Under the pieces are notes generated by a model. That model worked only from the letters and a program-made list of their open reading frames with translations. It searched no databases and had not been told where the DNA came from. A DNA stretch of 63,950 nucleotides, counting the filler, from Octopus bimaculoides (lineage: Eukaryota): assembly GCF_001194135.2 (NCBI RefSeq). It is 8 parts of 8 records of this genome, joined end to end, with 100 filler letters (N's around TTAATTAATTAA, not from the genome) between each part and the next. Parts side by side here need not be neighbours in the genome. Positions count along the whole stretch, not along the records: positions 17,259 to 43,106 come from NC_069008.1; 7 more parts are not named here. One strand, given 5' to 3'. The translations under genes were made by a program, and so were the position numbers. Shown here in pieces: positions 17,259-43,106 of this stretch (the first letter of the stretch is position 1; the number at the start of each line of letters is the position of its first letter).

Positions 17259-17279
17259 ATGTTAACATTATATAGCAAT

Positions 17280-17635
17280 AAATGTATTTAAATGTAAAAG
17301 AAGATATGATGGTGTGTGTGAGAACAATTTCGTAACTACAACTCTCTCTACATTGGTGACATAACTAAATGATATTTTTAATAAAAAACTATTCTTTCAG
17401 AATTCTCAGATATATTCTTATTTAACATATTTCTAGAATAAAGAGAAGCTAGTATCAATTCATTTGGCACTGGTGGTAAATATGTATTCTGTCATAACAT
17501 AATTGTACAGTTTAGTATAAAGTCATAACAAACAATATTTCATCTTACCATTATAGGATAAATATCTATGATATCTCATGAATATTCATGATCTTATTTA
17601 CATTCTTGAATGTATCTCTTATATACAATGGTGTG
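17280..17635 (+). repeat. Left arm of ~360-bp inverted repeat (partner 42744-43106)
   Basis: Reverse complement of the right end of the same piece. By eye it differs by one 7-bp indel and about two substitutions. Confidence 0.92.
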
Positions 17636-17681
17636 AAGTAAAGTGTACCATCATGGTTCTGTTGTTGATAAGATTTATATA

Positions 17682-18854
17682 TGAGGTGCATTCCAGAAGT
17701 TATCAGACTTTTTCAAGTGAGACATTTATTAATTTCCAGGAAGTAGAATATCTTAATCTCATTCAAAATGGGATCCTCCGATTTCGATGGAATTGTTGCA
17801 ACACTCTGGGCCCCTTTGTGAAGACCCTATGGATGCCCCTGAAAGTGAAGGTGTCCAGGACCCTTGATAAGGCCCTCTTGCATCTTCTTTGGTTCGGAGA
17901 ACAATCTAAAGTCACTGGGATCAAGGTCAGGTCTGTAGGGACAGTAAAGGATAGTCAAATAGTCCATTACTGGTATGAAACTGTGAACTCGTGTATGTAC
18001 CACAAACGTACGTGGAAGATCTCTCTGGCCCTTTGCAATGAAAACCCATTATGGACTCCCTCACAACCTCCACAAGTTACTTTTTGCTGACCATCTGGCC
18101 TGAGGGAACCCAATAGATGTAGATGATGCCCCAGCTGTTGAAAAAAGGGGATCATCATGAACTCCCCAGTGGACTTGCTTTGCTTGGCCTTCGTGGGTCT
18201 AGGGGGAGCCAGAATGCTGCCATTTGGCACTCTGTCTCTTGGTCTCTAGATCATAACAGTAGATTCAGCTTTTGTCCCTGGTCACCAGAGACCCAAGTAT
18301 TCTTGGACTGGAGTTAATGAGCTCGACCAGTTCCCTGCCATCACCAACATATCTCTCCTTCGTTCCTGATCATCCTGAGAAGAACTTTGTACACATTTTA
18401 CAAATTATTCAGCTCTTCATAAATGATCCAATGTACTGCAAGGGCACCGTGTACATCCACCGGGTTCTCTTTAGCCTGATGGTCAACAAAGTGGTTTTGA
18501 GGGAGTCCATTAACAGTTTTCATTGCAAAAGGCCAGAGAGCTCTTTCACTCAGACGTGTGGAACCTACACCGGTCCACAATTCCATCCCGGTAACTACTT
18601 GACAGAGATGGGCATCAGAAGAGTCCCTCATTCACCCTATGGCCCCGAACTTGTTCCCTGTGACTTTTTGTTGTTCCTCAAGATAAAGGGATCTATGACA
18701 AGGCTATTAGACGTCTTTATTTTGGAGGGATTATCATAGAGCCTTCACAAACTGGCTAGAGCAACGAAGTCAGTGGATCCCAGTTCAAAGAAGATGGGAG
18801 TTTAGTACTTTGTTGAAATTAATAAATGTCTGAAAAATTCTGGAATATACCTTG
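17682..18854. mobile_element. Degraded mariner transposase relic, two 3' halves in opposite orientation
   Basis: Minus strand gives ELINSSPRILGSLVTR and PRPTKAKQSKSTGEFMMIPFF. Plus strand gives YLTEMGIRRVPHSPYGPELVPCDFLLFLK (YSPDLAPxD motif). The two ends are related and inverted (GACATTTATTAATTTC / GAAATTAATAAATGTC). Confidence 0.8.
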
Positions 18855-18868
18855 TGTATGTATGTGTG

Positions 18869-18910
<42 letters not shown>

Positions 18911-18946
18911 AGAGTTTAAGGATTGGAGAAAACACATGTTATAATT

Positions 18947-19108
18947 GCATACTTTATTCCTACATATGTTTCAAAGGATTACAACCTGTGTGATCCATAG
19001 GGATCTTTGATATTAAAATTGTAACCTTCTCATCAGGGAAAGCATGGAAGATCCCTATGGATCACACAGGTTGTAATCCTTTGAAACATATGTAGGAATA
19101 AAGTATGC
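18947..19108. repeat. Perfect 61-bp inverted repeat with 40-bp spacer, running into a gap
   Basis: 18947-19007 is the exact reverse complement of 19048-19108. Confidence 0.85.
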
Positions 19109-20154
19109 NNNNNNNNNNNNNNNNNNNNNNNNNNNNNNNNNNNNNNNNNNNNNNNNNNNNNNNNNNNNNNNNNNNNNNNNNNNNNNNNNNNNNNNNNNNN
19201 NNNNNNNNNNNNNNNNNNNNNNNNNNNNNNNNNNNNNNNNNNNNNNNNNNNNNNNNNNNNNNNNNNNNNNNNNNNNNNNNNNNNNNNNNNNNNNNNNNNN
19301 NNNNNNNNNNNNNNNNNNNNNNNNNNNNNNNNNNNNNNNNNNNNNNNNNNNNNNNNNNNNNNNNNNNNNNNNNNNNNNNNNNNNNNNNNNNNNNNNNNNN
19401 NNNNNNNNNNNNNNNNNNNNNNNNNNNNNNNNNNNNNNNNNNNNNNNNNNNNNNNNNNNNNNNNNNNNNNNNNNNNNNNNNNNNNNNNNNNNNNNNNNNN
19501 NNNNNNNNNNNNNNNNNNNNNNNNNNNNNNNNNNNNNNNNNNNNNNNNNNNNNNNNNNNNNNNNNNNNNNNNNNTATATATATATATATATATTAAGTTT
19601 GTTTCCAGGGAAACGTTTTGAATATGCAAATAAAGCTCCTATTCCACCATACTGGTCACAGTCCAATGATGCTGACTGGTGAACCAGTTTTTTTTTGGGG
19701 GGGGGGGTGCATTGAGCTGCACCAATAAAATGTAGGATAAATATAATAATAAAAAATTTGGGGATGGAACTTATAAATATTTTAATGCATAGCTACATGA
19801 GTTTCCTATTCCTGGGATGATTATAGTGTAGTCCATGGTATCCATGGCCATCCAGTTGACCATCTTCATGGATTCATTTCTTCAGGTGATATAACATTAA
19901 TGGATGTTTAACCGAGGGTTGTTTATCCATTTTGAACAGTGAGGAGGTTGGTTATGTGGGGTGGAGGGGAAGGTGATGGAAAGCGAGGCAGGAATGGTAG
20001 TTATCTGGGGACAGGGGTGTCTGTGGTGATGGTGGACTTGTGTTGTTATTCGGTCTGCACATAAATATATATGAAGGGTGAATGAAAAGTCTTGAACTTC
20101 AAAAAAAATAAAACAAGACTTCAAGGCTGAAAACTTTTCATCCACCCCTCATAT

Positions 20155-20392: not shown

Positions 20393-20551
20393 TGATATGT
20401 GTGTGTTGGTATGATGTTAAGCTGCATCTGGTGGTGAGGTTCCAGTTCTGGAGTTGTTGGGTGCATGGAATCATCCCTTAATTCCCATTATTCCCAGGTC
20501 AGTTCTGACCCGGAATTGTAGAACCTGTCAGGGTCCCATCCATGGGTTAAA

Positions 20552-21614: not shown

Positions 21615-21646
<32 letters not shown>

Positions 21647-23437: not shown

Positions 23438-24706
23438 TTATTTATCTGTATGAATACTTGTGTGTGTAGTTAAGTGATGTCTTTGAGAGAATGATTTACC
23501 ACAGATGTCACAGTGATATGGTTTCTCACCTGTATGAATTCGTTCATGAGAAGTCAATTCAACCTTCTGACAGAATGATTTGCCACACACAGAACACCAG
23601 TAGAGCTTTTCTCCCGTATGCCTGCGCTTATGGACAATCAAATTATTCTTTTGAGAGAATGACTTACCACAGATATCACAACAATATGGTTTCTCTCCTG
23701 TATGAATGCGTTGGTGACTAATTAAGTTATTTTTGCGAGAGAATGATTTATCACAGATGTCACAGTGATATGGTTTCTCGCCTGTATGGCTTCGTTTGTG
23801 GGTAGTTAAGTTATGGATTTGAGAAAAGGACTTCCCACAGATGTCACAGTCATATGGTTTCTCTCCTGTGTGAGTACGTCTGTGTATAGTTAGGACACCA
23901 ATGTCAGAGAATGACTTACCACATGAATCGCACTGATATGGTTTTTCTCCAGTGTGAATACGTTCATGTCTTGTTAAGGTATTTCCACAGGAAAATGATT
24001 TACCACAGATTTCACAGTGATACGGCTTTTCTCCAGTATGAATGAGAATGTGTTTAGTCAAGTTGCTCGTTCCAGAAATCGATTTTCCACACACAGAACA
24101 CTGGTACAACTTTTTCCCCGTGTGCATGCGTTTGTGCACAATTAAAGTGCTTCTTTGAGAGAATGATTTACCACAGATATCACAACAATATGGTTTCTCT
24201 CCTGTATGAATGCGTTGGTGATTAATTAAGTCACATTTGTGAGAGAATGATTTACCACAGATATCACAGTGATATGGTTTCTCTCCTGTATGAACATGGC
24301 TGTGTGAAGTGAGGTTACTCTTTTGAGAGAAGGATTTACCGCAGACATCACAGCGGAATGGTTTTTCTTCTGTGTGGATACGCTGGTGGTTAATAAGGTG
24401 ACCTTTCTGATAGAACGACTTATCGCAAATATCGCAGTGGTACAGGTTTTCTCCACTGTGAATTCGTTGGTGAGTTGCTAAGTTAGCTTTGCGAGAGAAT
24501 GAGTTACCACAAACACTACAGTGGTGTGGCTTCTTTCCAGCATGAACGCTGTTGTGTGCAGTGAGTTTACATTTTTGCGAAAATATCTTCTTACAGATAT
24601 CACACTGGTAGATATCACCAGTTTCTTTCATCATAGCATCAGGAGAATCAACTTCATGGAAATCTGTTTGAAATTCATCCTTGTTTTCACACAATTCATT
24701 TTCCAT
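23438..24706 (-). CDS. C2H2 zinc-finger array protein ZNF1 (14 fingers, 422 aa from the first ATG)
   Basis: Intact ORF with 14 CxxC-x12-H-x3-H fingers and TGEKP linkers. The ORF track starts at a TTG (24772). The ATG at 24706 (MENE) matches the MEK starts of the other paralogs. Confidence 0.92.
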   Translation of the reverse strand: MENELCENKDEFQTDFHEVDSPDAMMKETGDIYQCDICKKIFSQKCKLTAHNSVHAGKKPHHCSVCGNSFSRKANLATHQRIHSGENLYHCDICDKSFYQKGHLINHQRIHTEEKPFRCDVCGKSFSQKSNLTSHSHVHTGEKPYHCDICGKSFSHKCDLINHQRIHTGEKPYCCDICGKSFSQRSTLIVHKRMHTGKKLYQCSVCGKSISGTSNLTKHILIHTGEKPYHCEICGKSFSCGNTLTRHERIHTGEKPYQCDSCGKSFSDIGVLTIHRRTHTGEKPYDCDICGKSFSQIHNLTTHKRSHTGEKPYHCDICDKSFSRKNNLISHQRIHTGEKPYCCDICGKSFSQKNNLIVHKRRHTGEKLYWCSVCGKSFCQKVELTSHERIHTGEKPYHCDICGKSFSQRHHLTTHTSIHTDK

Positions 24707-25044
24707 AATTATTCCAGTCTCACCAAAATATACAGATGTTTCTCTTTTGCTTTTGTAGTTGATTCCAAACAAATACTTATCAATTCACTGTTAAATTTCC
24801 ATTGACTGTGGTTTTTGTCCAATAAGTACATCCGTTAGAAATTCTTCAGTAATTTGTGATCCATACTGAATTAACAAGCAAAAATCACACTGGACAATGA
24901 TTTTGATTGATTTGAGTGATTGACAAGAATGTTCCGGTTTATCTCAGTTCAGAAGAAATAGTTTAAGAGTGATTGTATCAGTTTTGTAGCAAAACGATTA
25001 TTTCTGATGTAAAGAATTCTTTGATACCAATATCATTAAATAAT

Positions 25045-25690: not shown

Positions 25691-25907
25691 TGATCCTTGT
25701 TTGTCTCCCCACCATCACTTGACAACTGATGTTAGTGTGTTTACATCTCTGTAACTTAGTGGCTTGGCAAAAGAGACTGATAAAATAAGTTCTAGGCGTA
25801 AAAATAATAAGTCCTGGGTCGATATGTTTGACTAAAAGTGGTGTTCCAGCATGGCTGCAGTCAAAAGACTGAAACAAGTAAAAGAATATATATATAAATA
25901 TATTATA

Positions 25908-26224
25908 GGCGTAGGAGTGGCTGTGTGGTAAGTAGCTTGCTTACCAACCACATGGTTCCAGGTTCAGTCCCACTGCGTGGCACCTTGGACAAGTGTCTTC
26001 TACTATAGCCTTGGGCCGACCAAAGCCTTGTAAGTGGATTTGGTAGACGGAAACTGAAAGAAGCCCGTCGTATATGCGTGTATATATATATATATGTGTG
26101 TGTGTGTGTATGTTTGTATGTGTGTCCCCCCCAACATCGCTTGACAACCGATGCTGGTGTGTTTATGTCCCCGTAACTTAGCGGTTCGGCAAAATAGATC
26201 GATAGAATAAGTACTAGGCTTCTA
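25908..26224 (+). mobile_element. tRNA-derived SINE family A, cut by gap
   Basis: GGCGTAGGAGTGGCTGTGTGG head, GGTTCAGTCCCAC B-box and CCTTGGACAAGTGTCTT core. Many copies in the window. Confidence 0.9.
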
Positions 26225-26641
26225 ANNNNNNNNNNNNNNNNNNNNNNNNNNNNNNNNNNNNNNNNNNNNNNNNNNNNNNNNNNNNNNNNNNNNNNNNNNN
26301 NNNNNNNNNNNNNNNNNNNNNNNNNNNNNNNNNNNNNNNNNNNNNNNNNNNNNNNNNNNNNNNNNNNNNNNNNNNNNNNNNNNNNNNNNNNNNNNNNNNN
26401 NNNNNNNNNNNNNNNNNNNNNNNNNNNNNNNNNNNNNNNNNNNNNNNNNNNNNNNNNNNNNNNNNNNNNNNNNNNNNNNNNNNNNNNNNNNNNNNNNNNN
26501 NNNNNNNNNNNNNNNNNNNNNNNNNNNNNNNNNNNNNNNNNNNNNNNNNNNNNNNNNNNNNNNNNNNNNNNNNNNNNNNNNNNNNNNNNNNNNNNNNNNN
26601 NNNNNNNNNNNNNNNNNNNNNNNNNNNNNNNNNNNNNNNNN

Positions 26642-26990: not shown

Positions 26991-27927
26991 ATGGAGAAAC
27001 TTTAAACACATAAACACACTATACGATCATGTAATTAGTATGCGTGCGCGCAACGACCAGATGGTGTTGCGTACTAGTATCGAATGGTCGCCCTTCACCT
27101 TTCATCTTTTCAGGGGATCGATAAAATAAGTAGTTGTATACTGTCAACTTAACGTGACAGTCCCAATAAGGGAATCATACTACTGCTATTTAGCCCTAGG
27201 AAGCTGAACCGCTTACAAGTCGGCCTTGACACATTTCCTATGTCCTTATGTTTATGAGGGGGAGACAAGCACCTCCACCCGGGGTCGATGTAATCGTCTC
27301 ATTCCCACCTCTCCTCCAAGCTGCCCTTGAGGCAAAAAACTTAAAATATTATTATTTTCACAGCTTTAATATAAAGTGGTGAGCTTGCAAAATCGTCAGC
27401 ATGCCTAGTGGGTATTTTGTCCGTCTGTACGTCCTGAGTTCAAATTCTGCCGAGGTCGTGCTTGCCTTCCACCCCCTTCGGGGGTCGATAAATTAATTCC
27501 CAGTGGAGCCGATGTAATTGACTCGTCCCCCTTCACCAAACTTTCAGACCTTGTGTGTAGAGTAGAAAGGATTATCACAGCCTTAATGTAAATCTTTGTC
27601 AACTTACCGTTTTCATATGTAGTCAGCTCGATAAACAACAGGATAATATTGATTCATGTTGTATTCTACAATGAGTTATCAAATACAAACAACTTTGGTT
27701 TCTCTTCGTTTCTACTTCCAGATGGATCCCAGTCGGTTCTCAGTACCTTTTACACCTTTTCTGCTCAAGAGCTACAGAGATAAACCGGACAACAAAAATC
27801 ATCAGTTATTTCCCCTGATTCTTGCAATCCTTCGAAACTTTCGTTTTTACACTTAGCCTTATTTTACCGTTTTTTTTTCTCCCGGTTTTGGATTTGTATT
27901 TTTAATGTGGTTTAGTATTATACAAGT

Positions 27928-28295
27928 GGAGGCGCAATGGCCCAGTAATTAGGGCAGCGGACCCACGGTTTCGATTCCCAGACCGGGCGTTTATTGAGCG
28001 AAAACACCTAAAGCCCCACGAGGCTCCGGCAGGGGATGGTGGCGAATCCTGCTGTACTCTTCCACCACAACTTTCTCTCACTCTTACTTCCTGTTTCTGT
28101 TGTACCTGTAATTCAAAGGGGCCAGCCTTGTCACACTCTCCGTCATGCTGAATCTCCCCGAAAACTACGTTAAGGGTTCACGTGTCTGTGGAGTGCTCAG
28201 CCACTTGCACGTTAATTTCACGAGCAGGCTGTTCCGTTGATCGGATCAACTGGAACCCTCGACGTCGTAAGCGACGGAGTGCCAACAACAACAAC
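27928..28295 (+). mobile_element. tRNA-derived SINE family C, full length with 11-bp TSD
   Basis: GGAGGCGCAATGGCCCAG head and (ACA)n tail. AGTATTATACA is duplicated at 27914-27924 and 28296-28306. Confidence 0.88.
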
Positions 28296-28304
28296 AGTAT
28301 TATA

Positions 28305-28492
28305 CAGTAATCCCTCGACTGACATGGGTTTTACGTTCCAAAACCTCTCACAGAAATAATTAAAATCTAAAAAATTATAAATACCTATCGGCTGCAGAAA
28401 CCTGCGATATAATTTTACGCATATTAGCCAGAAAAATCTGCAACGTACTTGGTGTGCAAAAGGTGAACCTCGATATGGCGAAGGATTACTTG
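28305..28492. mobile_element. Internally deleted copy of the pogo/Tigger-like MITE
   Basis: CAGTAATCCCTCGAC start, and CACAGAAATAATTAAAATCTAAAAAA shared with 8254 onward. Confidence 0.7.
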
Positions 28493-28639
28493 CATATGTA
28501 TCATACATGGGCGAGGGTAAAGCGCGTGCACACCACCCATTTCTGGTGTTTTTTATTTTATTATTTTCCAATTCTTTTTCTTTTCTGATGTCTTTGTTTT
28601 TGAGTTTCTTGAGGACAATACCCGAATCACTGATGGCGG

Positions 28640-29390
28640 CTCCTGGGTGGATGTTGTTTACCTTGACTTTGCTAAAGCTTTTAATTCTGTGCCACACAAA
28701 AGACTTATGGTGAAACTCTCTGTGATGGGTGTAAGAGATGATCTCTAGAACTGGTTGAAGTCCTTCCTTATCGGCTGTAAAGAGGTTGTCACAGTTCTAG
28801 GACAGCACTCTTCACCCTATGAGATGACATCTGGTGTACCACAGGGATCTGTTCTAGGCCCCCTTTTATTTGTTGCATATATTAACGCCATAGATGCCAA
28901 CTTAAAAGGACAGATCCTGTACACTATAGATCTTTATTGCAATCAGACCTGGACACGATCCAGTAATGGATCATGGACTGGCAACTCAAGCTGGCTGTGG
29001 ACAAATATACCACCATGCATTTTGGGAGGAAAATCCCAGCATCTACTTACTCCCTCCACCAACACTAATCTCAAAAACTCTTCTTGTGAACATGACCTGG
29101 GCATTATTATCGACAGCGATTTGCGTTGGACAAAACACATTGCTAAAATTACCAAGAAGGTTGAGGGTGTCTTGGCATCACTTACCGAATCCTTTGTGAG
29201 CCGCTCTCCGGCTATCTATCTGAGGCTTTATATAGCTATGGTGCGGCCTCACCTGGAATTTGCGTCTCCAGTCTGGAACCCCCATCTTGCCCAGGATATT
29301 AATCGTCTGGAAACCGTTCAGTGACATGCAACCAAGAGAATACCCTCCATCAGGCATTTGCCATATTCTGAACACCTTACTTCCTTAGTG
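28640..29390 (+). mobile_element. CR1/L2-type LINE reverse transcriptase fragment (pseudogene)
   Basis: DVVYLDFAKAFNSVPH, SGVPQGSVLGPLLF, EHDLGIII and VRPHLEFASPVWNPH motifs. It has stops, and the YADD region is lost. Confidence 0.9.
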
Positions 29391-31611
29391 GTCTATTGGG
29401 TGGGGAAGAAAAGGAATTTTTCTAATTGAAGTAGTCAGTTTTTAATTGAAAAACCAGATGCTATTTTTAACTTTCTTCAGTAAAAATTAAAAATNNNNNN
29501 NNNNCGGCCTCACCTGGAATTTGCGTCTCCAGTCTGGAACCCCCATCTTGCCCAGGATATTAATCGTCTGGAAACCGTTCAGTGACATGCAACCAAGAGA
29601 ATACCCTCCATCAGGCATTTGCCATATTCTGAACACCTTACTTCCTTAGTGGTCTATTGGGTGGGGAAGAAAAGGAATTTTTCTAATTGAAGTAGTCAGT
29701 TTTTAATTGAAAAACCAGATGCTATTTTTAACTTTCTTCAGTAAAAATTAAAAATCCATTTCCAGGTTTTGTTTTTTATTATGTATTCATGAAAGAATGG
29801 TTGCATGAATGTGGTCAACTTTGAAATCCTAGACGTTTTTGAAAGTGATTTTTTAGTACACTATACACAGCAATCATATGTATATGTGTAAACACACACA
29901 TGCATCTATATACTACATTTTCATATTTATGTACACTCCAATTAGATTGGAGCCTGGTGTTGCCATCTGGTTTCACCAGTCCTCAGTCAAATCGTCCAAC
30001 CCATGCTAGCATGGAAAGCGGACGTTAAACAATGATGATGATGATGATACACACATATATTAGAACACATGATTTAAAAAAAAAATATAATTAAAGATTC
30101 ATCTCTGAGAGACAAACATAGACACATATACATACACTTATATATATATATACTCAGTGTTGGTTATGAGTTTTGCTTAGGTTAACTGTGGTTGGTTCAT
30201 CTTGATGTAGCTGTGTGTTGGTTATGCATGAACTGGTCTAGTCTGTGTGCCTGGAGTGACAGAAGATAAATGAATGACAAGAAGAACCAGGTAAATTCGA
30301 TGTGACTTATTTATTACAACCCTTTATAAATATACATGGCAAATGTCTTACATATTTTGCAAGTTTTATCTAACTATATCTGCAACAGTGGAAGTTGTAT
30401 CATAGTTGAAATTCTGTAGCATGTTCATGGCTTGGTTCTGTGTGTTGGGCAGCACTGGTTGTTGTGATATAATCTCTCTCCCCCTCCTCCTCTCTGCCCA
30501 AATATGTGGGGGACTGTTCCTTATATAATGACAGTTGCTCAGAAAGAGAATTTTTCTGCTTGGAATAAAAACAGTTGCTCAAACACCGATTGGCTAGTTA
30601 AGACCATTTGATCTTTGCAACAGATTTAGTCCAACCCTAATCACATGACCAATGTTGACAATCTCGAAATACACACATCATCATCACCTAATGTTTCCTG
30701 TCTATGCTGTCATGGATTGACAAACTGGAAGGCTCAACCAGACTCTCGGCTGATTTGGCAAGTTTTCTATGGCTGCATGCCCTTCACATGAACCATTCTG
30801 AGAGTGTAATGGGTGCCAGTTACGTGACACCACCAGGATTGCCATTTGCATGAAACCAGTACCAACTTCCTATATATATAAATGATGGGTTTCTTTCAGT
30901 TTCTCTCTAACAGACCCACTTACAAGGGTTTGTTTGGCCTAGGGTTATAGTAGAAAAGACTTGCCCAAGGCGCCATGCAGAGGGACTGAACCCAAAACCA
31001 TGTGATTTGGATTTAAGCTTCTTACCACACAGCCACACAAATTGATTTTAACTAAATTCATGCAAAACAAATTCAAAATTTGGAGGAAATTGTCTTTATT
31101 CCAAAAGTATCCCACAGGTAAGTTACCTTAGACGTGGTGACATAAACTATAGAGTTGGGAGGCTGTTATCACACAGTTCTATCGCCATTCCTGTGTGAAT
31201 ACATTTATAATTAGAGAGAGTGTCCCTTATTTGTTTTCTGTTTTTGGCAAAGAAGGAACTTTGACAATTACAATCCCTGGATGAGTAGCTTGGTTATTTC
31301 CAAGCAGAATGCCTGCAATACTACCACCATTTTAGGAGGAGGTCAAAATGCTTATTCTTCTCATGAATTGTCACAGTGCATCTCTTTTCAAATTCACTCA
31401 AGCAGAACATTTTCCCTTGACAGTCTCACTTTTCCACTTTTCATCTTTTTTTAAGTGTATCATGGATTATTTTACTGATTACAGAATAAACTAAAACAGA
31501 GTCTTTGGTCAATTCATGTACATATTGTCAATTTAATTTATCATTTATGTATCATATCTATATGCACAATACATGCTCTAGCAGAAACCCCGCCTCTGGG
31601 CAGTTTTTCTG

Positions 31612-33345
31612 CTAGTCACAATAATTTGGTGTCTCTCCTGTATGAATACGTTTATGAGTAATTAGGTTACTACTGGCAGAGAAAGATTTGTTGCAGATAT
31701 CACAGTGATATGGCTTCTCTCCTGTATGAATACGTTTGTGTACAATCAAGGAAGTACTTGCAGAAAACAATTTACCACAGACATCACAATGATATGGCCT
31801 CTCTCCAGTATGGAAACGTTTATGAGCAGCTAAGTTGCTACTTTGAGAGAATGATTTACCACAGATGTTACAAGAAAATGGTGTATCTCCTGTATGGATA
31901 TGCTTGTGACTAGTTAAGGCACTACTCTGAAAAAATGATATACCACAGATATCACAGTGATATGGTTTCTCTCCTGTATGAGTACGTATATGAGTAATTA
32001 GGTTACTACTGATAGAGAAAGATTTGTTACAGACATTACAGTGATATGGTTTCTCCCCTGTATGAATACGTTTATGATTAGTTAAAGACGTGTTTGCAGA
32101 GAATGATTTACCACAGACGTCGCAGTGATATGGCTTCTCGCCTGTATGGAAACGTTTGTGAGAAGTTAAGCTGCCACTGCGAGAGAATGATTTACCACAG
32201 ACATCACAATAATATGGTGTCTCTCCTGTATGAATAAGCTTGTGACTAGTTAAAGCACTACACTGAGTAAACGATAGACCACAGATATCACAGTGATATG
32301 GCTTCTCCCCTGTATGAAGACGTTTATGAGTAGTTAGGTTGCTACTGATAGAGAAAGATTTGTTACAGATGTCACATTGATATGGCTTCTCTCCTGTATG
32401 AATACGTTTATGATTAGTTAAAGCAGAGCTGCGAGGGAAAGATTTACCACAGATATTACAGGAATATGGTTTCTCCCCTGTATGAGTACATTTGTGAGAA
32501 TTTAAAGCACTTTGGTCACAGAATGATCTACTACAGATGTTACACTGATATGGCCTCTCTCCTGTGCAAACATATTTGTGACGATTTAAATCACTTTGGT
32601 TAGACTTCTCTCCTGTGTGAGTACGTATATGAATAGTTAGGTTACTGCTGACAGAAAAAGATTTATCACAGCTATCACAGTGATATGGCTTCTCTCCTGT
32701 ATGAATACGTTTATGTACAATCAAGGAAGTACTTGCAGAGAACAATTTACCACAGATATCACAGTGATATGGCTTCTCTCTGGTATGGAAACGTTTGTGA
32801 GAAGCTAAGTTGCCACTTCGAGAGAATGATTTACCACAGATATCACAATAATATGGTGTCTCTCCTGTATGAATATACTTGTGACTAGTTAAAGTACTAC
32901 TCTGAGAAAATGATTTACCACAGATGTCACAGTGATATGGCTTCTCTCCTGTATGAATTAGTTTATGACGAGTTAAAGCACTGCTACATGGGAATGATTT
33001 TCCACAGATATTACAGGAATATGGCTTCTCCCCTGTGTGAATACGTTTGTGACGAGTTAAAGCACTTGGGTCAGAGAATGATTTACCACAGATGTCACAG
33101 TGATGTGGTTTCTCTCCTGTATGACTATGTTGGTGTGTAGTCAAGTTAATTTTTTGAGAGAATGATTTACCACAGATATCACAGTGAAATGGCTTCTCCC
33201 CTGTATGAATACGTTTGTGCATATTCAAGTAACCCTTTCGAGAGAAAGACTTTTTACAGACATCACAGTCATATGACAATTTTTGTTCCCCTTTTTCTTT
33301 ATCTTCTGGAAAAGTCAGATCTTTTAGTTTCTCACTCTTTTCCAT
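31612..33345 (-). CDS. C2H2 zinc-finger array protein ZNF2 (19 complete fingers, 1 internally deleted, ends mid-finger; 577 aa)
   Basis: Intact 1734-bp ORF with TGEKP/TGETP linkers. Confidence 0.93.
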
Positions 33346-33675
33346 TAGTTTTCTAAAATCCCAATATATATATATTTTCTTCTTTTTGCTTCTGTAGTCT
33401 TTTGTTTACAAATATTTTGACTGCTGTATTTCTGTCCAGTGTTACCTTTGTCTAAAAACTCTGCAGTAAATTTATCCAAGTTTAATTTGCAACCAGACAG
33501 TGATGTCTAGAAAGTTTGCTAATAACAAATTTCAGAGTAAATATATCAGAGGAATTCTACCATAGACTTATAGAAACAATCTTATATATCTGCTCTGTAC
33601 AATATTTTCAATTTGGTCTTTAAAAGATGATAAATAATGAGAATGTATCTTGTTATTCCAATGTCATCTGATATT

Positions 33676-33695
33676 CTGAAATAATAAAGAAACAA
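33676..33695 (-). promoter_or_regulatory. Putative 3' splice acceptor of the ZNF2 main exon
   Basis: Minus strand TTTCTTTATTATTTCAG|AATATCAGATGACATT. Confidence 0.7.
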
Positions 33696-34414
33696 CAGTG
33701 TAACATATAGAGGCTACTTAAAATATACAGAGTAAACATTTCCATAGAGGTAAATTCTAGAAATAAGCATTTACCTGAACAACAGAACTTTTCAATTTAT
33801 TAAAAATAACAGCTAAATAGCCCTTAAATCACGTGTCANNNNNNNNNNNNNNNNNNNNNNNNNNNNNNNNNNNNNNNNNNNNNNNNNNNNNNNNNNNNNN
33901 NNNNNNNNNNNNNNNNNNNNNNNNNNNNNNNNNNNNNNNNNNNNNNNNNNNNNNNNNNNNNNNNNNNNNNNNNNNNNNNNNNNNNNNNNNNNNNNNNNNN
34001 NNNNNNNNNNNNNNNNNNNNNNNNNNNNNNNNNNNNNNNNNNNNNNNNNNNNNNNNNNNNNNNNNNNNNNNNNNNNNNNNNNNNNNNNNNNNNNNNNNNN
34101 NNNNNNNNNNNNNNNNNNNNNNNNNNNNNNNNNNNNNNNNNNNNNNNNNNNNNNNNNNNNNNNNNNNNNNNNNNNNNNNNNNNNNNNNNNNNNNNNNNNN
34201 NNNNNNNNNNNNNNNNNNNNNNNNNNNNNNNNNNNNNNNNNNNNNNNNNNNNNNNNNNNNNNNNNNNNNNNNNNNNNNNNNNNNNNNNNNNNNNNNNNNN
34301 NNNNNNNNNNNNNNNNNNNNNNNNNNNNNNNNNNNNNNNNNNNNNNNNNNNNNNNNNNNNNNNNNNNNNNNNNNNNNNNNNNNNNNNNNNNNNNNNNNNN
34401 NNNNNNNNNNNNNA

Positions 34415-34655
34415 CACTCGCGCATCCGCTGTAGCGAGTCGTGACTAGTCGATCCTGCGACTACCTAGCGCGTGTGCTCGTCATGCGCAGAAATAGATGT
34501 GACACCAAAATACACCCTGGAAGAACGTAAAACGACGTTTTTAAGAGTAAGATGGAGAAGATTCAACAACAAAAAAAAAAAGTTATTTACTTTGTGTTTT
34601 ATTTAATTTGTTTAGGATCGACTAGTCACGACTCGCTAGCGCGGATACGCGAGTG
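34415..34655. promoter_or_regulatory. Inverted pair of a 42-bp CpG-rich motif (candidate promoter/first-exon element, or MITE TIRs)
   Basis: 34415-34456 and 34614-34655 are reverse complements at 39/42. A third copy lies at 39859-39900. Confidence 0.55.
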
Positions 34656-35671
34656 CGCGCACCGGGTCCACTCTTCTTGAATAGTACCCACTTTTTTTAA
34701 CAGATTCCCTCGTAAACGTAATTTACGTCATCCGGAATATATTTGCAGCAAATTTCATGGAAGATTATGAGGAAATAAACTCTGAGACAGAATGGAAACA
34801 TATCTGAAGTTGGTGGGTCTGGAACAATGAGATTTTAGGATCGATTACAAAAAGTACATCAGTTAACTAAAACACACAACAAACTAACGTGGAAACGATG
34901 GATCGTGTAGAAGGTAGCCTCCATAGCTAGAAATAGCAGCCAAATGTCGAACAAAACAAAGGACATCTGAGACAGAAAGTATTAAAAGATTAAATGCTTT
35001 CGTTGTATAATACTTACGGAATTGTTCTTATAATGGATAGTGTTGTTGTTAGAAGTGCGTCGGGTGGTGGAGAAATCTATTATAATTGTGTTTGGGAGTT
35101 AAGAAATGAACAAGACACGTTTGTCAAGATGTAATGAATGGAGGCGGAAGTGCGTTTAGTGCGCATGCGTATTAAATATTGGTTTCAAATTTTGGCACAA
35201 GGCCAGCAATTTCGGGGGGAGTGGGGATAAGTCGATTACGTGGAAAAAAATACGCTTCAGATGGTGTAGAATAGAAGACACCATATGACAATATGGCCTG
35301 CCAGCCCCTGATTTTACACACACACTGACAAATATACCAACAGTATCTTTTCTTCATTCAAGAAATATAATGCAACATAGATGAATATTACAAAAGAAGA
35401 ATTTTTATTAAAAATACAACAATGGTAGATATTGATGTGGTTACATAAAATATAACGTTAACAGGTTGTTATAACACACTGATATCTTCTTTCCTGATAG
35501 GATATATTTGTTGTTACATGCGACATTTTTAATTCCACAAATCACTTCAGACATTGATGCAGTTACTCTTCTGTATGAATGTGTTTGTGTCAGTGGTCTA
35601 TTTAAGAGAAGCATTCACTACAGATATTACAGTAATGTGGTTTCTCTTCTGTGTGAAGGTTCGTGTATGTG

Positions 35672-35833
35672 CACTAGCATAGCTAGAGTGTGTGTCGCCC
35701 GGGTTTGCCACTCTCGGACCCCACAAAAAACATTGCCTACAGCAGAGCCCTCGAAAGTGGTGTCCCTTTAAAAGTGCCGCCTGGGGCTGGGGCAGACTGT
35801 ATCTACCGCCCCCTCCCCCTAGCTACACTAGTG
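35672..35833. mobile_element. 162-bp MITE inside a fossil finger
   Basis: Ends CACTAGCATAGCTAG and CTAGCTACACTAGTG are 15-bp TIRs matching at 13/15, with a GC-rich interior. Confidence 0.65.
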
Positions 35834-35950
35834 TACTTGTAGTTAAGTGATTTGTTTGAGAGAAACATTCACTACAGATTTTGCAGTGATGTGTTTTCTC
35901 ATTTCTATGGTGTGTGTGTGGTTAAGTGATGTGGTTGACAGAATGATTTA

Positions 35951-36578
35951 AGTCTTTAGCATTTAAACTGGCCACATCTGGCCTGAATATTCTACCCATT
36001 TTATGTTCAGACCAGAAATCTGGGTTGCCATATGTCCCATACAAAGACATTCCAAAAAAAAAAATAAACAATCACATCATTAATATCTTCAAGCTAAAAG
36101 ATAATGAACAACAACAGGAAACAGGAGTGGTTGTGTGGTAAGTAGCTTGCTTACCAACCACATGTTCCGGGTTCAGTCCCACTGTGTGGTACCTTGGGCA
36201 AGTGTCTTCTACTATAGCCTTGGGCCGACCAAAGCACTGTCAGTGGATTTGGTAGACGGAAACTGAAAGAAGCCCATCGTATATATGTATATATATATAT
36301 ATGTTTGTGTGTCCGTGTTTGTCACCCCAACATCGCTTGACAACCGATGCTGGTGTGTTTACATCCCCGTAACTTAGCGGTTCGGCAAAAGAGACCGATA
36401 GAATAAGTACCAGGCTTCCAAAGTATAAGTCCTAGGGTCGATTTGCTCGACTAAAGGTGGTGCTCCAGCATGGCCGCAGTCAAATGACTGAAACAAGTAG
36501 AAGAGTAACAGATTTAAAACAATGTGAATAAAAAAAAGCATTACATTCAACAAAGTAATCTCAGTGCTAACGAGCTAA
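35951..36578. mobile_element. piggyBac-like MITE (degenerate TTAA ends) with a nested SINE
   Basis: TTAAGTCTTTAGCATTTAAAC at the left end and GTGCTAACGAGCTAA at the right end. Zinc-finger DNA resumes on both sides. Confidence 0.5.
36123..36510 (+). mobile_element. SINE family A, full length
   Basis: AGGAGTGGTTGTGTGG head through GACTGAAACAAGTAGAAGAG tail. Confidence 0.9.
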
Positions 36579-36842
36579 CCATACAGATGTCAGTGATAGA
36601 GTTTCTCCTCTGTATAAATATTTCTGTGTATCATCATTCAACATCCGTTTTCCATGAGTTGCAGGTTTGACAGGGGCTAGCTAGGCAGATTGCATCAGGC
36701 TTTACTGTCTGTTTTGGAAGGGTCTTCACGGTTGGATGCTCTTCCTAACATCAAGCACCCAACAAAGAGGACTGAGGGCTTTTCTTTGTGGTACCAGCTG
36801 TATAAAGATGTTTATGCATAGTTCAGGTACCTGCATCATAAA

Positions 36843-37179
36843 AACGTAAAGACCCCCCTTCGGTCATGAATGACCATGGGATTACACCAAGAAAGTTCCC
36901 CTCTATGAGGCACAAATCTGGGCAAGTTTCTTAATAGGAGACCAGCAGTCACCCACGTATACCAGCCTCTCCTATCCATGCCACTGACATTATCCAAAGG
37001 CTGATATAGCTTGGCACCAGTGACGTCACAACTCATTTCTACAGCAGAGTGAACTGGAGTAACGTAAAATAAAGTGTCTTGCTCAAGAACACAACACACA
37101 ATCTGGTCTGGGGAATCAAACTCACTACTTCATGATTGTCAGCCGAATGCTCTAACCATTGAGCCATGCGCCTTCACAC
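36843..37179 (-). mobile_element. SINE family D inserted just past the ZNF3 stop
   Basis: The minus-strand head GTGTGAAGGCGCATGGCTCAATGGTTAG lies at 37179 and below. Confidence 0.8.
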
Positions 37180-37194
37180 ATCATAGTGATATTG

Positions 37195-38214
37195 TTACTC
37201 TCTTTCATGGATATATACATGTATAGTCAGGTTATCACTTTGAGAGAATGACTGGTCAGAGATACTACACTGGAGTTGCTTCTCTCCTGAATGAATATTT
37301 TTATGTGTAGTTAAGTTACCTTTATGAGAAAAAGATTTATTGCAGATATCACACTGATATGGTTTTTCTCCTGTATGAATCCGTTTGTGTGTAGTCAAGA
37401 TACCATTCTGAGAGAATGATTTGCCACAGACATCACAGTGATATGGCTTCTCTCCTGTATGAATGGATTTGTGTCTAATTAAGTGGCTTCCTACAGAGAA
37501 AGATTTCCCACAGATATTGCACACATACGGTTTCTCACCTGTATGAATGTGTTTGTGTTCAGCAAGGCTATTTCTTTGAGAGAATGATTTACCACAGATA
37601 TCACAGAGAAACGGTTTCTCTCCTGTATGAAGATGCTTGTGATTTATCAAGCTTTCTTTCTGAGAGAATGATTTACTACAGATATCACAAGGGTACGGCC
37701 TCTCACCTGTATGGATACGTTTGTGTGTAGCTAAGTTGCCACGTCCAGAAAATGATTTATCACAGATGTCACAGTGATATGGTTTCTCTCCTGTATGAAT
37801 GCGTTTGTGAATGGTTAAGCCACCTGTCTCAGAAAATGACTTATCACAGACATCGCAGCTGTAGGGTTTCCTTCCTGTGTGAATTCTTTTGTGTATTGTT
37901 AAGCTACTTTTTTGTGAGAATGATTTACCACAGACATCGCAGTGATACGGTTTCTCTCCTGTGTGAATGTATCTGTGAATATTGAAGTTACCCTTCTGAG
38001 AGAATGATTTACCACAAATATCACAGTGATATGGTTTTTGTCCGGCATGAATCTGTCTGTGAATATTCAGATTACCTTTTTGAGAGAATGACTTTCTACA
38101 GATATCACAATGGTAAAATGAATTGCCTGAATCTTTTGACAATTCCCCAAGAAACTCATTCTTTTCAAACTGCGATTCACATTTTACACTGACTTCAGAG
38201 AATTCCTTCTCCAT
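37195..38214 (-). CDS. C2H2 zinc-finger array protein ZNF3 (10 canonical fingers plus 1 degenerate; 339 aa)
   Basis: Intact ORF. The last finger has CSIS in place of CxxC. Confidence 0.92.
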
Positions 38215-38561
38215 AACTTTTCTTCACTCTAACTGAAATATTCGGTTAATTTTCTTTAAGTTCTTATATTTTATTCCTCACAAATATTCATTCTGTTGTA
38301 TTTCTTTATCAATTGTGATCTTTGTCAAAATCTGAAGGTCCTGCAAACTTCTTTGTAATCCAAGTTCAATCAGAATACAGATTCCAAACAGTGCAGCAGA
38401 GAAATTTTGTTAACAATCGTAGCCAAAAGAATTCACAGTAATTCTTACACAGATTTGTATAAACAAGGATTATAACTTCTCTGTATAACAGTTTCCTTTA
38501 ATTTTGGTAAATGATAAATCCAAGGTTAAAATATTCTGGAATTCCTATGTCATCTGGCATT

Positions 38562-38590
38562 CTGAAACAACAGGGAAACAATAAAAAAAA
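38562..38590 (-). promoter_or_regulatory. Putative 3' splice acceptor of the ZNF3 main exon
   Basis: Minus strand TTTCCCTGTTGTTTCAG|AATGCCAGATGACATA. Confidence 0.7.
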
Positions 38591-39380
38591 ACTAGAGAGG
38601 AGACAGAAAAAATAAATTTTGTGATTCAACAATGGAGTTTGCTCAGTATTTCTATAATGATAAACAATAGATAAATGCATGTGTGTGTGTTTGTCAATCA
38701 CTACTGCTTGGCTACAAATTTTGGTGTGTTTACATTTCCATAACTTAGCGGTTCAGCAAACAGATTGATGAAATAAGAACCAGGTATAAAAAAAACAGAA
38801 ACAAATATATAGTGGGGTCGATTTGCTTCCCAAAAATTCTTCAATGCATGCTAACGAAATATACATCTTATTCTTATGGAAGAAAATAAGGCGGCGTATT
38901 TTTCAGCATATTTTGGAAAAAAAAATTCTGAAAAAAGTGAAAAATGAAGGAAATGTGGGTGGGGGGAGGGGGTAATTTAGAAATATCGATTTTTGCCAAT
39001 TTTTTTGCAGATTCGTATCCCCCGAAAATGGAGTTTTGTGTCGAAATAAAAAAAAAAAAAATTAAGGGTAGTTTTTGGTGGGGACGAGCGTAGCCTCGAA
39101 AACGTTTCTCAAACAATTTTATTAAAAATATATACACGTTTAATTAAGTCTGCGAAGCGGGAGGGTGAAATTAAGAAGTAAAAAAAAAAAATTTAATCCC
39201 CACTCCCACACTGACTTGTTTCAGTCACTAGACTGTGTCTATGTTGGGGCACACGTCGAAGTATTTTAGCAGAACAAATTGACTTTTTTTAACCTGGTAC
39301 TTTGAATTGTGAAAAAAATTATGGGAAGACAAAATCGGAGGTGGGCAAACTTCTGTAGGTATTTCTCACTTAAGCATTTA

Positions 39381-39573
39381 TTTGTTTCGATCATTCTAGA
39401 AAATTAAGTTATTTTTGCCCATTTCCATTTCGTTTCGGCCATTCAAGATAGATTATTATGTTAGTACGTTCTACGTTTCGTTTCGCTCATTCAGGATAGC
39501 CAGGATATTTTTGTACATTCCTCATTTTCGATTCGGTTATTCAAGGTAACCAAGCTATTTTCGTGCATTTCCC
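39381..39573. repeat. Degenerate ~48-bp tandem repeat x4
   Basis: TTTCGTTTCG..CATTCA(A/G)GATAG-like units start at 39381, 39428, 39476 and 39526. Confidence 0.7.
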
Positions 39574-39858
39574 CATAATTACCGGTTTCATTTTATACCT
39601 CGCACACATTTCTTTTAGTCTTTTACTTGTTTCAATCATTTGACTGTGGCCATGCTGGAGCACCGCCTTTAGTCAAGCAAATCGAGGCACTATCATGCTA
39701 TTAGCTGTCAGAAGTGAAGTATCTGTCTGTCTGCCTGCCTGCCTGCATGCCTGTTGCTGGTTTGAGTCGATTCTTTGGCTACTGACAGCTAATACCATGA
39801 CTGGCCGGAGCGAGCTATATGTCTGTCTGTCTGTCTCTCTATCTATCTATTACTCGAA

Positions 39859-39900
39859 AGTTCGCGCGTCCGCGCTAGCTAGTCGTGAGTGGTCGATCCT
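39859..39900 (-). promoter_or_regulatory. Third copy of the 42-bp CpG-rich motif, upstream of ZNF3
   Basis: TCGCGCGTCCGCGCTAGCTAGTCGTGAGTGGTCGATCCT matches the 34614 copy at 34/39. Confidence 0.55.
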
Positions 39901-40419
39901 ATTATTTTTAAACTTCAAACTTCATTTGTTTTCTATTTTGATAAATTCTCTTTTTATATTTTAAATAATTTGCAATTTCAGGAAATATGTTTTTATATTA
40001 AATTTGTGTTTTCTACTNNNNNNNNNNNNNNNNNNNNNNNNNNNNNNNNNNNNNNNNNNNNNNNNNNNNNNNNNNNNNNNNNNNNNNNNNNNNNNNNNNN
40101 NNNNNNNNNNNNNNNNNNNNNNNNNNNNNNNNNNNNNNNNNNNNNNNNNNNNNNNNNNNNNNNNNNNNNNNNNNNNNNNNNNNNNNNNNNNNNNNNNNNN
40201 NNNNNNNNNNNNNNNNNNNNNNNNNNNNNNNNNNNNNNNNNNNNNNNNNNNNNNNNNNNNNNNNNNNNNNNNNNNNNNNNNNNNNNNNNNNNNNNNNNNN
40301 NNNNNNNNNNNNNNNNNNNNNNNNNNNNNNNNNNNNNNNNNNNNNNNNNNNNNNNNNNNNNNNNNNNNNNNNNNNNNNNNNNNNNNNNNNNNNNNNNNNA
40401 TAGCATGATAGTGCCCAAA

Positions 40420-40740
40420 TCGATCCCAGGACTTATTCTTTCTAAGCCTAGTACTTATTCTATCGATCGGTTTTGCCGAACCGCTAAGTTACGGGGACGT
40501 AAACACACCCGCATCGGTTGTCAAGCGATGTTGGGGGCACAAATACAGACACACAAACATATATATATGTATATACATATATACGACGGGCTTCTTTCAG
40601 TTTCCGTCTACCAAATCCACTCACAAGGCTTTAGTCGGCCAGAGGCTATAGTAGAAGACACTTGCCCAAGGTGCCACGCAGTGGGACTGAGCCCGGAACC
40701 ATGTGGTTAAGCAAGCTACTTACCACACAGCCACTCCTGT
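40420..40740 (-). mobile_element. SINE family A
   Basis: Reverse complement of the family A consensus, ending CACAGCCACTCCT. Confidence 0.88.
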
Positions 40741-41293
40741 CCCTAAAATCTCCATCTCCCATTATTCAATCTAGTTTTTAATTTCCAAACCCGAATGGTT
40801 GAATCCAAAGTAAATTTAGCTACCATTTCTTAGAGGGTCGGTCGGGCAACAACGTTGAGGGTTCCATCAGTGTCTCTAGCTGCTTTTAGCCCTGGGTCAG
40901 TTCAGCTCTGAACTGAGCCGATAATATTAAAGGCAACGTGTGTTCAAGGATGTTATAAATTCTATAACAGATCAATAAAAAAAGAACGTAACATTATATC
41001 GACGAACGAAGGAAAGATGATTGATTAAAAAGGAAATGAGTCCAACGGAACCTACCTCATGAAAAATCTGTATGCGTAGCGACAATTATCATCAAATACG
41101 ACGTAAAGAAACTAAAGACACATTATGAATGACGTACAGCAGTAAATGGAATTACTGAAGTTTCATTGGTCAGTTCAGGTCATCTAATTAACCACTGAGG
41201 AAGGATGTGAGGAGGTCTTGAAAGCATATTTTTGGGAGGTCAAAGTGGTGGATGAGTCGGATAAAAATATCTTCATGGTTCTTCACGTCTCAT

Positions 41294-41485
41294 ACTCTCT
41301 TTTACTTGTTTCGGTCATTTGACTGCGGCCATGCTGGAGCACCGCCTTTAGTCGAGCAAATCGACCCCAGGACTTATTCTTTGGAAGCCTAGTACTTACT
41401 CTATCAGTCTCTTATGCCTGACAGGTAAGTTACGAGGACGTAAACACACCAGCATCGGTTGTCAAGCGATGTTGGGGGGAGACAA

Positions 41486-41520
<35 letters not shown>

Positions 41521-41690
41521 CATATGTACGACGGTCTTCTTTCAGTTTCCGTCTACCAAATCCACTCACAAGGGTTTGGTCGTCCCGAGGCTATCGTAGA
41601 AGACACTTGCCCAAGGTGCCACGCAGTGGGACTGAACCTGGAACCATGTGGTTGGTAGGCAAGCTACTTACCACACAGCCACTCCTGCGC
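41294..41690 (-). mobile_element. SINE family A, full length
   Basis: CTCTTTTACTTGTTTCGG tail to CCACTCCTGCGC head. Confidence 0.9.
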
Positions 41691-42330
41691 GTTTTGACAA
41701 CGTCAGCTTTGTTTATTATGTTTTCGAAGCCATTATAACGAAAAATCCAGGTCAATTCACCCGTTTCATTATGGATCGAATAGACTGTAGCCAAAATCTA
41801 TCACGGCAGTATTTTTAGGACTCCAAAATAAGTTTAGCACCTTTTGTGACTGAAAATAACGAGGTTTCTACCATTTGGTGAGCAATATACACAAAACCAT
41901 GTGGCACCTACTTTTTTGCATCTTGGCGCTGGGTTACCTATTATGCAAAATAAACACATGTTTAGAGCACCAACGAAAGCGAAAGGGCACCACAGAAATG
42001 GTAAATGGCTTATGACACAACAATAATCACTTTGAACTTCATAAAATAATAATCGGGATGCCTTATCTCTACTAAGCTGATGTGTTACGTAAGAATTAAT
42101 TTTAAGGATCTGATCAACGATTTAGCATTTAAAAAATGCATGAGAAACTTTGCGAATATAATAAAGTGGAAATATACAAAAATAAAATATTATTTTCCAT
42201 CTTACTGGTTTGTTTCATTTTGAAAAATAAAATTTTATTTTATGGTTTATTGTTGTTTATATTTTGAATTTCATAAATATGGGGCACAAAAATCTCTGAA
42301 GTACTTAGGGCTTCTATGGATATTTATTGC

Positions 42331-42540
42331 TTTATTGCCCACAGAGAGCTAAACATAGAGGGGACAAACAAGGAGACACAATGGGATTAAGTCGATTACA
42401 TCGACCGCAGTGAGTAACTGGTACTTATTTAAGCGACCTTGAAAGGATAAAAGGCAAAGTCGACCTCAGAACGTAACGGCAGACGAAATATCGCTAAGCG
42501 TTTTGACCGTCGTGCTAAAGCTTCTGCCAGCTCGCCACCT
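42331..42540 (-). mobile_element. SINE family B with a short internal deletion
   Basis: Ends CTGCCAGCTCGCCACCT. GTCGACCTC is joined directly to AGAACGTA. Confidence 0.8.
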
Positions 42541-42743
42541 TGGGGCTTATAAGGATATTATTCCAGCCCTGGGTATAGACAAACAAGCACATTTATGGGT
42601 TTTAAGGGTTAAACTGCAATATACTTTGATTATCAGAAGATTAGCAATGTTGTTCGTGGCACAATATTTTTAAAATTATTTTTCACACAATAAGCACAGG
42701 ACTGGCTGTACAGGAAAAAGCTTGCTTGCCATCTACAGGGTTC

Positions 42744-43106
42744 CACACCATTGTATATAAGAGATACATTCAAGAATGTAAATAAGATCATGAATATTCA
42801 TGAGATATCATAGATATTTATCCTATAATGGTAAGATGAAATATTGTTTGTTATGACTTAAAGATTTATACTAAACTGTACAATTATGTTATGACAGAAT
42901 ATATATTTACCACCAGTGCCAAATGAATTGATACTAGCTTCTCTTTATTCTAGAAATATGTTAAATAAGAATATATCTGAGAATTCTGAAAGAATAGCTT
43001 TTTATTAAAAATATCATTTAGTTATGTCACCAATGTAGAGAGAGTTGTAGTTACGAAATTGTTCTCACACACACCATCATATCTTCTTTTACATTTAAAT
43101 ACATTT
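42744..43106 (-). repeat. Right arm of ~360-bp inverted repeat (partner 17280-17635)
   Basis: CACACCATTGTATATAAGAG...TTTAAATACATTT runs to the end of the piece. Confidence 0.92.

Follow-up and report, generated by a model that had tools for sequence, protein, structure and literature searches.

Within the window, a 63,950-nucleotide stretch of Octopus bimaculoides DNA, we analyzed a piece of 25.8 kb (positions 17259 to 43106) that lies at about 5.847-5.873 Mb on chromosome CM046628.1 (ASM119413v2). The piece contains three C2H2 zinc-finger (ZNF) genes, a pair of inverted arms at its two ends, and several further repeats (Table 1). Coleoid cephalopods carry clustered, lineage-specific expansions of C2H2 zinc-finger genes (PMC9068888, PMC12513265). 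The O. bimaculoides locus resembles these clusters: its three poly-finger genes share one orientation, have a single exon each, and fall within 15 kb.

Table 1. Features of the analyzed piece, in positions of the window
Feature	Position	Strand	Description
Left arm	17259-17635	+	Homology to the right arm covers 17280-17635; 17259-17279 are extra outer bases
ZNF1	23438-24772	-	C2H2 ORF, 14 fingers; 422 aa when counted from its first ATG (24706)
SINE-like multi-copy repeat	25694-26225		Stops at the gap 26226-26641
Reverse transcriptase fragment, LINE-like	28600-29494	+	RVT_1, E = 1.4e-12, 48 bits; enters the artefactual 10-N gap
Direct duplication, perfect, 251 bp	29244-29755		Copies 29244-29494 and 29505-29755 flank the 10-N gap 29495-29504
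ZNF2	31612-33345	-	C2H2 ORF, 577 aa, 19 fingers
Further SINE-like copies	36121-36512, 40416-40749, 41297-41690	both orientations	88-92% identity
ZNF3	37195-38214	-	C2H2 ORF, 339 aa, 10 fingers
Right arm	42744-43106	-	Reverse complement of the left arm; ends with the piece at 43106

ZNF2 contains internally duplicated blocks of fingers (82-84% identity), and its ORF stops mid-finger. The ATG of ZNF2 is also the start of an annotated gene model of 1062 aa. Rebuilding this model from that ATG yielded zero two-exon solutions and 218 three-exon solutions, every one with poor splice-site scores. ZNF3 is a single-exon gene in the GCA_001194135.2 annotation. Exact look-ups of ZNF1 (422 and 398 aa) and ZNF2 (577 aa) gave no annotated product on record, and none of the three ORFs was present in the protein collection that we searched. 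Protein searches with ZNF1 and ZNF2, and with the N-terminal 40 aa of ZNF2, yielded vertebrate or other poly-ZNF proteins or nothing, with no cephalopod protein among the results. The ZNF paralogues share 57-59% identity at the amino acid level and 68-72% at the DNA level, whereas the arms are ~99% identical, indicating that the repeat forming the arms is much younger than the cluster. The ZNF genes between the arms are ordinary old tandem paralogues; nothing in their arrangement is unusual, and tandem duplication suffices as the mechanism.

We aligned the two ends of the piece by BLASTN (17259-17700 against the reverse complement of 42681-43106). Positions 17280-17635 paired with 43106-42744 at 354 of 363 identical positions (E = 2e-180), and a repeat search recovered the same inverted pair, divided at an indel. 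The arms differ by two substitutions (A/G at 17388/42998 and G/A at 17484/42902) and by seven bases (AATCTTT) that are extra in the right arm at 42860-42866. They are spaced 25.1 kb apart, with an assembled length of 363-377 bp. At the inner end, both arms stop at the same base (...CAATGGTGTG), which in the left arm is 17635. Past this boundary, we detected no resumption of homology over 1.5 kb inside the left arm and 2.3 kb inside the right arm, except for (TA)n. At the outer end, the left contig carries 21 bases for which the truncated right arm has no counterpart, so that the breaks of the two arms are at most 21 bp apart in relative position. The repeat/unique junctions of both arms lie inside contigs, away from gaps. 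The differing unique flanks, together with the two substitutions and the indel, indicate that we are dealing with two separate sequences, as opposed to a single contig that was placed twice. An earlier note on this DNA had described a near-identical inverted repeat of ~360 bp with a common sharp inner boundary, placed around three co-oriented C2H2 genes. The alignment bears out both the repeat and the boundary, and all three genes proved to be intact and on the minus strand. The note had also seen both arms run off the piece, which is correct for the right arm; the left arm reaches the outer end of the piece through 21 bases that have no assembled counterpart.

The arm is AT-rich (26% GC) and noncoding, with no ORF of note. 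Searches of the arm for tRNAs and against Rfam gave no match and no tRNA-like head, and its DNA fold was unremarkable (z = -0.08). The visible inner part of the arm contains two small palindromes and lacks any repeated subterminal motif, the true termini lying outside view. By inspection, the inner end (...TATATACAATGGTGTG) has no poly-A or microsatellite tail, TG..CA, terminal inverted repeat (TIR), or hairpin with CTRR. Likewise, the search for an internal TIR or internal repeats within the arm gave nothing diagnostic of a transposable element (TE). The lack of a terminal hallmark is compatible with a TE, as only one end of the arm is visible. In 31 kb of reachable sequence, the arm occurs in only two copies, and exact-pattern scans of JGI metagenome contigs gave 0 matches. 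As in an interspersed repeat, the copies share a precise terminus with unrelated sequence beyond it, and as in an inverted duplication, they are two inverted copies at or above 90-95% identity. An ORF of 170 aa spans the arm boundary, and its exact look-up gave no record. A mariner-like motif starts ~50 bp inside the left-arm boundary. We considered a mariner insertion that shortened the homology of the left arm and rejected it, as searches of Pfam and PDB did not confirm the motif as a transposase and no homology resumes in the right inner flank.

The Pfam scan of the interior took in ten of the larger ORFs, along with 17636-19108 and about 27200-29480 in translation; the remaining interior was checked solely via the list of ORFs of at least 90 aa. 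No transposase domain was detected in the Pfam-scanned stretches between the arms, where the reverse transcriptase fragment was the only match, in agreement with the earlier claim that no intact transposase lies there. The 251-bp direct duplication is a contig-end overlap that the assembler left unmerged, and the 10-N gap between its copies is an artefact. We rejected a similar origin for the arms, given their inverted orientation, their spacing of 25 kb, and their differences at three sites. A contig overlap is identical, direct, and separated by a small gap, whereas each arm is joined to different unique sequence. As a whole, the interior resembles an ordinary set of old tandem ZNF paralogues, strewn with SINE-like and LINE debris.

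ASM119413v2 was made by re-scaffolding an earlier (2015, short-read) shotgun assembly with Hi-C data (PMC9068888), and long reads therefore played no part in resolving the arm ends. Within the locus fetched through ZNF3, the only ORF whose look-up led to one (window 27195-43106), the piece and CM046628.1 are 100% identical across 15.9 kb, and the 382-, 575- and 10-N gaps of the piece are kept unaltered in the chromosome-level assembly. In CM046628.1, 1188 N directly adjoin the right arm, which places the outer arm ends outside the assembled sequence. Comparison of the stretch past this gap (positions 1-3920 of the fetched locus) for arm context gave nothing informative. The piece itself contains five gaps, none of which interrupts a ZNF ORF. 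Of its 12 contig ends, 7 to 8 lie in repeats with copies elsewhere in the same 25.8 kb, indicating that repeat-terminated contigs are normal for this assembly. Contigs ending in repeats reach ~300-530 bp into them, similar to the assembled length of the arms.

We consider it probable that the arms are copies, in opposite orientations, of a single young repeat that extends beyond the portion assembled here and is situated at short-read gaps. This was the most mundane reading in the earlier note, two young repeat copies that halted the assembler, and it fits best with the 1188-N gap, the re-scaffolding by Hi-C only (PMC9068888), and the repeat-rich contig ends. The sequence in the arms would most likely represent one end of an interspersed element or a small duplicated segment, with the remainder of each copy falling in an unresolved gap of the short-read assembly, and the common sharp inner boundary would mark where the repeat unit truly ends. 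A defined repeat terminus is expected to give an identical end base with no homology resuming beyond it. Each contig leaves unique sequence, enters a separate copy of the repeat, keeps copy-specific variants, and then breaks, presumably at the point beyond which read pairs with an anchor in the unique flank no longer resolve the path. The similar break position in both arms is expected if the assembler was halted in both copies by a single feature of the repeat or by how far anchored read pairs reach. The bracketing of the ZNF genes would arise largely from the delimitation of the piece by breaks and not from the ends of a mobile unit. As a by-product, inverted copies of ~99% identity 25 kb apart could allow the block to invert via non-allelic homologous recombination (NAHR). 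The earlier note had listed an inversion-prone block among its readings, and the geometry of the arms could have this consequence. As with other contig breaks in young interspersed repeats, the arms sit at contig ends beside N gaps, other contig ends also lie in repeats, and the chromosome-level version retains the gaps; a difference is that the arms are 99% identical, compared with 88-92% for the SINE-like copies at gap edges. Against a young interspersed repeat, the arm is seen only twice in the reachable 31 kb and bears no TE hallmark, a very high-copy family would normally halt a k-mer assembler less than 360 bp from the boundary, and a low-copy segmental duplication would give an identical picture in this assembly.

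Such a duplication is an alternative that we regard as unlikely: a locus-specific segment duplicated in inverted orientation around the ZNF block, with its copies maybe kept alike by gene conversion. In that case, NAHR would tend to invert the 25-kb block, which might be polymorphic in orientation. Inverted low-copy repeats mediate inversions by NAHR at human F8 (int22h) and at 8p23.1 (olfactory-receptor repeats). The octopus locus is similar in having a gene block between near-identical inverted arms, and ZNF clusters are typical sites of local duplication; the difference is that the arms here are resolved for ~0.36 kb only and in one observed orientation. An inverted duplication is consistent with the presence of only two copies in the reachable 31 kb, with 99% identity amid much older SINE-like repeats (88-92%), and with an arm that carries no TE hallmark. 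Furthermore, the contigs enter the repeat for more than 360 bp with copy-specific variants, which is easier at low copy number. However, the resolved 363-377 bp is under the usual 1-kb criterion for segmental duplications, the sequence past the right gap contributes nothing informative, the assembled orientation is the sole one in evidence, and in a repeat-rich genome the priors favor TE copies. It is more improbable that a single genomic copy of the repeat is represented by two alleles attached to different unique sequences, for which a heterozygous inversion or rearrangement, a chimeric contig, or a scaffolding error could be the source. End-duplication artefacts do occur in this piece, as in the perfect 251-bp duplicate at the 10-N gap, and two substitutions and one indel between the arms could be allelic. 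The copies in this known artefact differ from the arms in being adjacent, in direct orientation, and 100% identical, and both repeat/unique junctions lie within contigs and not at gaps. The breakpoint of a heterozygous inversion should have forked the contig exactly at the boundary. In addition, the divergence of ~0.6% plus an indel between the arms is several times the heterozygosity of the sequenced individual, which we take to be roughly 0.08%.

The earlier note had also proposed a large non-autonomous cargo element with long TIRs that moves ZNF clusters. The arms would then be the TIRs of a unit of at least ~26 kb that contains the three ZNF genes and depends on a transposase encoded elsewhere for its movement in trans, and we find this extremely improbable. 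Cargo and composite elements with long inverted ends include Pack-MULEs, the long-TIR Maverick/Polinton elements, and, in Drosophila, the Foldback-flanked "transposing elements". Like these elements, the locus has inverted repeats several hundred bp long on either side of a segment with multiple genes, in which the scanned stretches hold no transposase; it differs in showing neither a superfamily signature nor genes of Polintons or MULEs and in having an old-looking interior. What speaks for a cargo transposon is the geometry of near-identical inverted arms with a common inner boundary around genes, along with the absence of a transposase domain from the scanned stretches. No defining feature of such an element is visible, however: its outer termini and any target-site duplication would fall in the gaps, neither a second copy of the unit nor an empty site is known, and the inner arm end shows neither subterminal repeats nor a superfamily-like terminus. 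Moreover, the diverged paralogues and decayed SINE/LINE debris of the interior are typical of resident chromosomal sequence. These observations offer no positive evidence for a cargo element with long TIRs, and the interpretation given in the earlier note is supported in part.

Repeats are where a gap-rich short-read assembly breaks into pieces, so the same young repeat is to be expected at both ends of such a piece, and its presence there does not point to a cargo element. As it stands, the case serves mainly as a caution about assemblies of this kind. We regard as very unlikely the broader proposal that the arms are the inner portions of long terminal repeats, either of a composite cargo element that moves entire ZNF sub-clusters within the octopus genome or of an inverted-repeat cassette that flips the 25-kb block between two orientations in the population. 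If the arms do bound a mobile or invertible unit, they would provide a concrete route for octopus C2H2 clusters to spread and rearrange, and such a mobile or flipping unit would be a specific mechanism contributing to the C2H2 expansion in cephalopods.

In a BLASTN alignment of 17280-17635 and reverse-complemented 42744-43106, 354 positions out of 363 matched (E = 2e-180), and a repeat search recovered the same pair of arms, split by an indel. We observed two substitutions between the arms (A/G at 17388/42998 and G/A at 17484/42902) and seven additional bases (AATCTTT, 42860-42866) in the right arm. The inner end is identical to the base in both arms (...CAATGGTGTG). These findings confirm the near-identical inverted repeat and the common sharp inner boundary claimed in the earlier note, and the repeat is real, with a chance match excluded. 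The right arm is truncated at the piece end, and the left contig has 21 extra outer bases (17259-17279). When the 1.5 kb adjoining the left arm on its inner side was sensitively compared with the inner 2.3 kb next to the right arm, only (TA)n was shared, and homology therefore does not resume past an insertion. The exact common inner end has the appearance of a defined repeat terminus.

The arm is AT-rich (26% GC versus 39% for the piece), contains no meaningful ORF in an ORF scan, matched no tRNA or Rfam family, and has an unremarkable fold (z = -0.08 by fold scoring). Exact-pattern scans of JGI metagenome contigs gave 0 matches to it. The final 8 bases of the left arm (ATGGTGTG, 17628-17635) recur 319 bp outward in the same arm (17309-17316), with 11 of 13 bases matching once context is counted, and the right arm does likewise; this recurrence may be coincidental, may mark a target-site-like duplication flanking a 311-bp insert, or may be left over from a tandem unit.

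The piece contains five N runs, none of which interrupts a zinc-finger ORF. Multi-copy repeats lie at both edges of the 416-N gap and at the right edge of the 382-N gap, (TA)n lies at the right edge of the 466-N gap, and a further run spans 575 N. On its two sides, the 10-N gap (29495-29504) carries perfect direct copies of one 251-bp sequence (29244-29494 and 29505-29755). This duplication is a contig-end overlap left unmerged, and the true sequence across this gap is therefore almost certainly continuous, with one 251-bp copy. This duplication falls within a reverse-transcriptase fragment and is retained in the chromosome-level assembly. The locus fetched from that assembly (L001, chromosome CM046628.1) was 100% identical to the piece over their shared span (window 27195-43106). 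It retains the 382-, 575-, and 10-N gaps as they are and has 1188 N immediately outside the right arm; in the 3.9 kb past this gap, we detected no zinc-finger gene, coding signal, or arm-related sequence. As a Hi-C re-scaffolding of the 2015 short-read assembly (PMC9068888), the chromosome-level assembly is unable to resolve what the short reads left unresolved. Overall, 7 or 8 of the 12 contig ends in the piece fall in sequence that has other copies in these 25.8 kb, and contigs extend about 300-530 bp into such repeats, much as the arms extend for 363-377 bp. Assembly breaks set the limits of the piece, and repeats are where this assembly breaks.

Apart from the zinc-finger ORFs, the interior is typical repeat debris, including microsatellites, the reverse-transcriptase fragment (RVT_1, E = 1.4e-12, Pfam), and several SINE-like repeat copies, each about 300-400 bp long. 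This repeat has no tRNA-like head by ARAGORN, and its copies often sit at contig ends. In agreement with the earlier note's claim that no intact transposase is present, Pfam detected no transposase domain in ten of the larger ORFs or in the translations of 17636-19108 and about 27200-29480; the remaining interior was screened via the ORF list alone. Translation of two head-to-head inverted fragments (17967-18131 and 18442-18594; 77% complementary) gives in each a C-terminal motif that is mariner-like, PY.P[ED]L.P.DF.LF, and Pfam and PDB searches did not confirm a transposase in them.

Coordinates of the zinc-finger ORFs between the arms and of SINE-like repeat copies
Feature	Position	Strand or orientation	Details
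ZNF1, C2H2 poly-finger ORF	23438-24772	minus	14 fingers
ZNF2, C2H2 poly-finger ORF	31612-33345	minus	19 fingers
ZNF3, C2H2 poly-finger ORF	37195-38214	minus	10 fingers; 339-aa product
SINE-like repeat, at least 5 copies	25694-26225, 36121-36512, 40416-40749, 41297-41690; L001 1084-1750	both	88-92% identity

The three co-oriented C2H2 genes described previously were all found. They are old paralogues, sharing 57-59% protein and 68-72% DNA identity. Exact look-up of the window-encoded proteins matched ZNF3 alone, annotated in GCA_001194135.2 (Octopus bimaculoides) on CM046628.1, with the plain ZNF1 and ZNF2 ORFs absent as annotated products. Large protein searches with the window zinc-finger queries returned no cephalopod protein, and none of the three ORFs is present in the protein collection searched. 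ZNF2 has one disrupted finger and stops mid-finger after 577 aa, whereas a public 1062-aa model begins exactly at its ATG (window 33345 leftwards; L001 14870-21020+), spans more than 6 kb, and probably reads through the cluster as a chimera. Within ZNF2, finger blocks about 336 and about 600 bp long are duplicated at 82-84% identity and are younger than the divergence of the three genes.

The arms probably represent one young repeat, present as two copies in opposite orientation and extending past its assembled part. They break at most 21 bp apart in relative position, suggesting that homology goes on outward until a feature that both copies share, or as far as anchored read pairs can reach. 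The unique sequence adjoining the two arms differs, as do the variants they carry, and the arms are therefore two distinct copies rather than one contig reused. Together with the exact inner end and the tendency of contigs to break in repeats, these observations favor the ordinary reading in the earlier note, two young-repeat copies that stopped the assembler. An allelic or assembly artefact is unlikely, as both arm junctions are internal to contigs and the one clear artefact of the piece, the 251-bp duplicate at the 10-N gap, differs strongly in properties from the arms.

A locus-specific inverted duplication flanking the zinc-finger block is a less probable but appreciable alternative, somewhat favored by the very high arm identity, by an arm without transposable-element hallmarks, and by the 360-bp reach of the contigs into the repeat, over which variants specific to each copy are preserved. 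A cargo transposon carrying the block, with the arms as its inverted ends, is very improbable: its support is purely geometric, and the interior resembles old resident sequence. Its defining features would be outer termini, a target-site duplication, extra copies, and empty sites. Likeness to Pack-MULEs, Mavericks, and Foldback-flanked segments, composite or cargo elements whose inverted ends are long, is in outline only. The closest parallel is ordinary contig breaks in young repeats of short-read assemblies, followed by inverted low-copy repeats that mediate inversions. The observation is real, and its likeliest explanation is ordinary.

The three genes are likewise ordinary members of the C2H2 zinc-finger expansion known in cephalopods (PMC9068888, PMC12513265). 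Whether the arms are young-repeat copies or a locus-specific duplication, their inverted geometry could permit inversion of the zinc-finger block by non-allelic homologous recombination.
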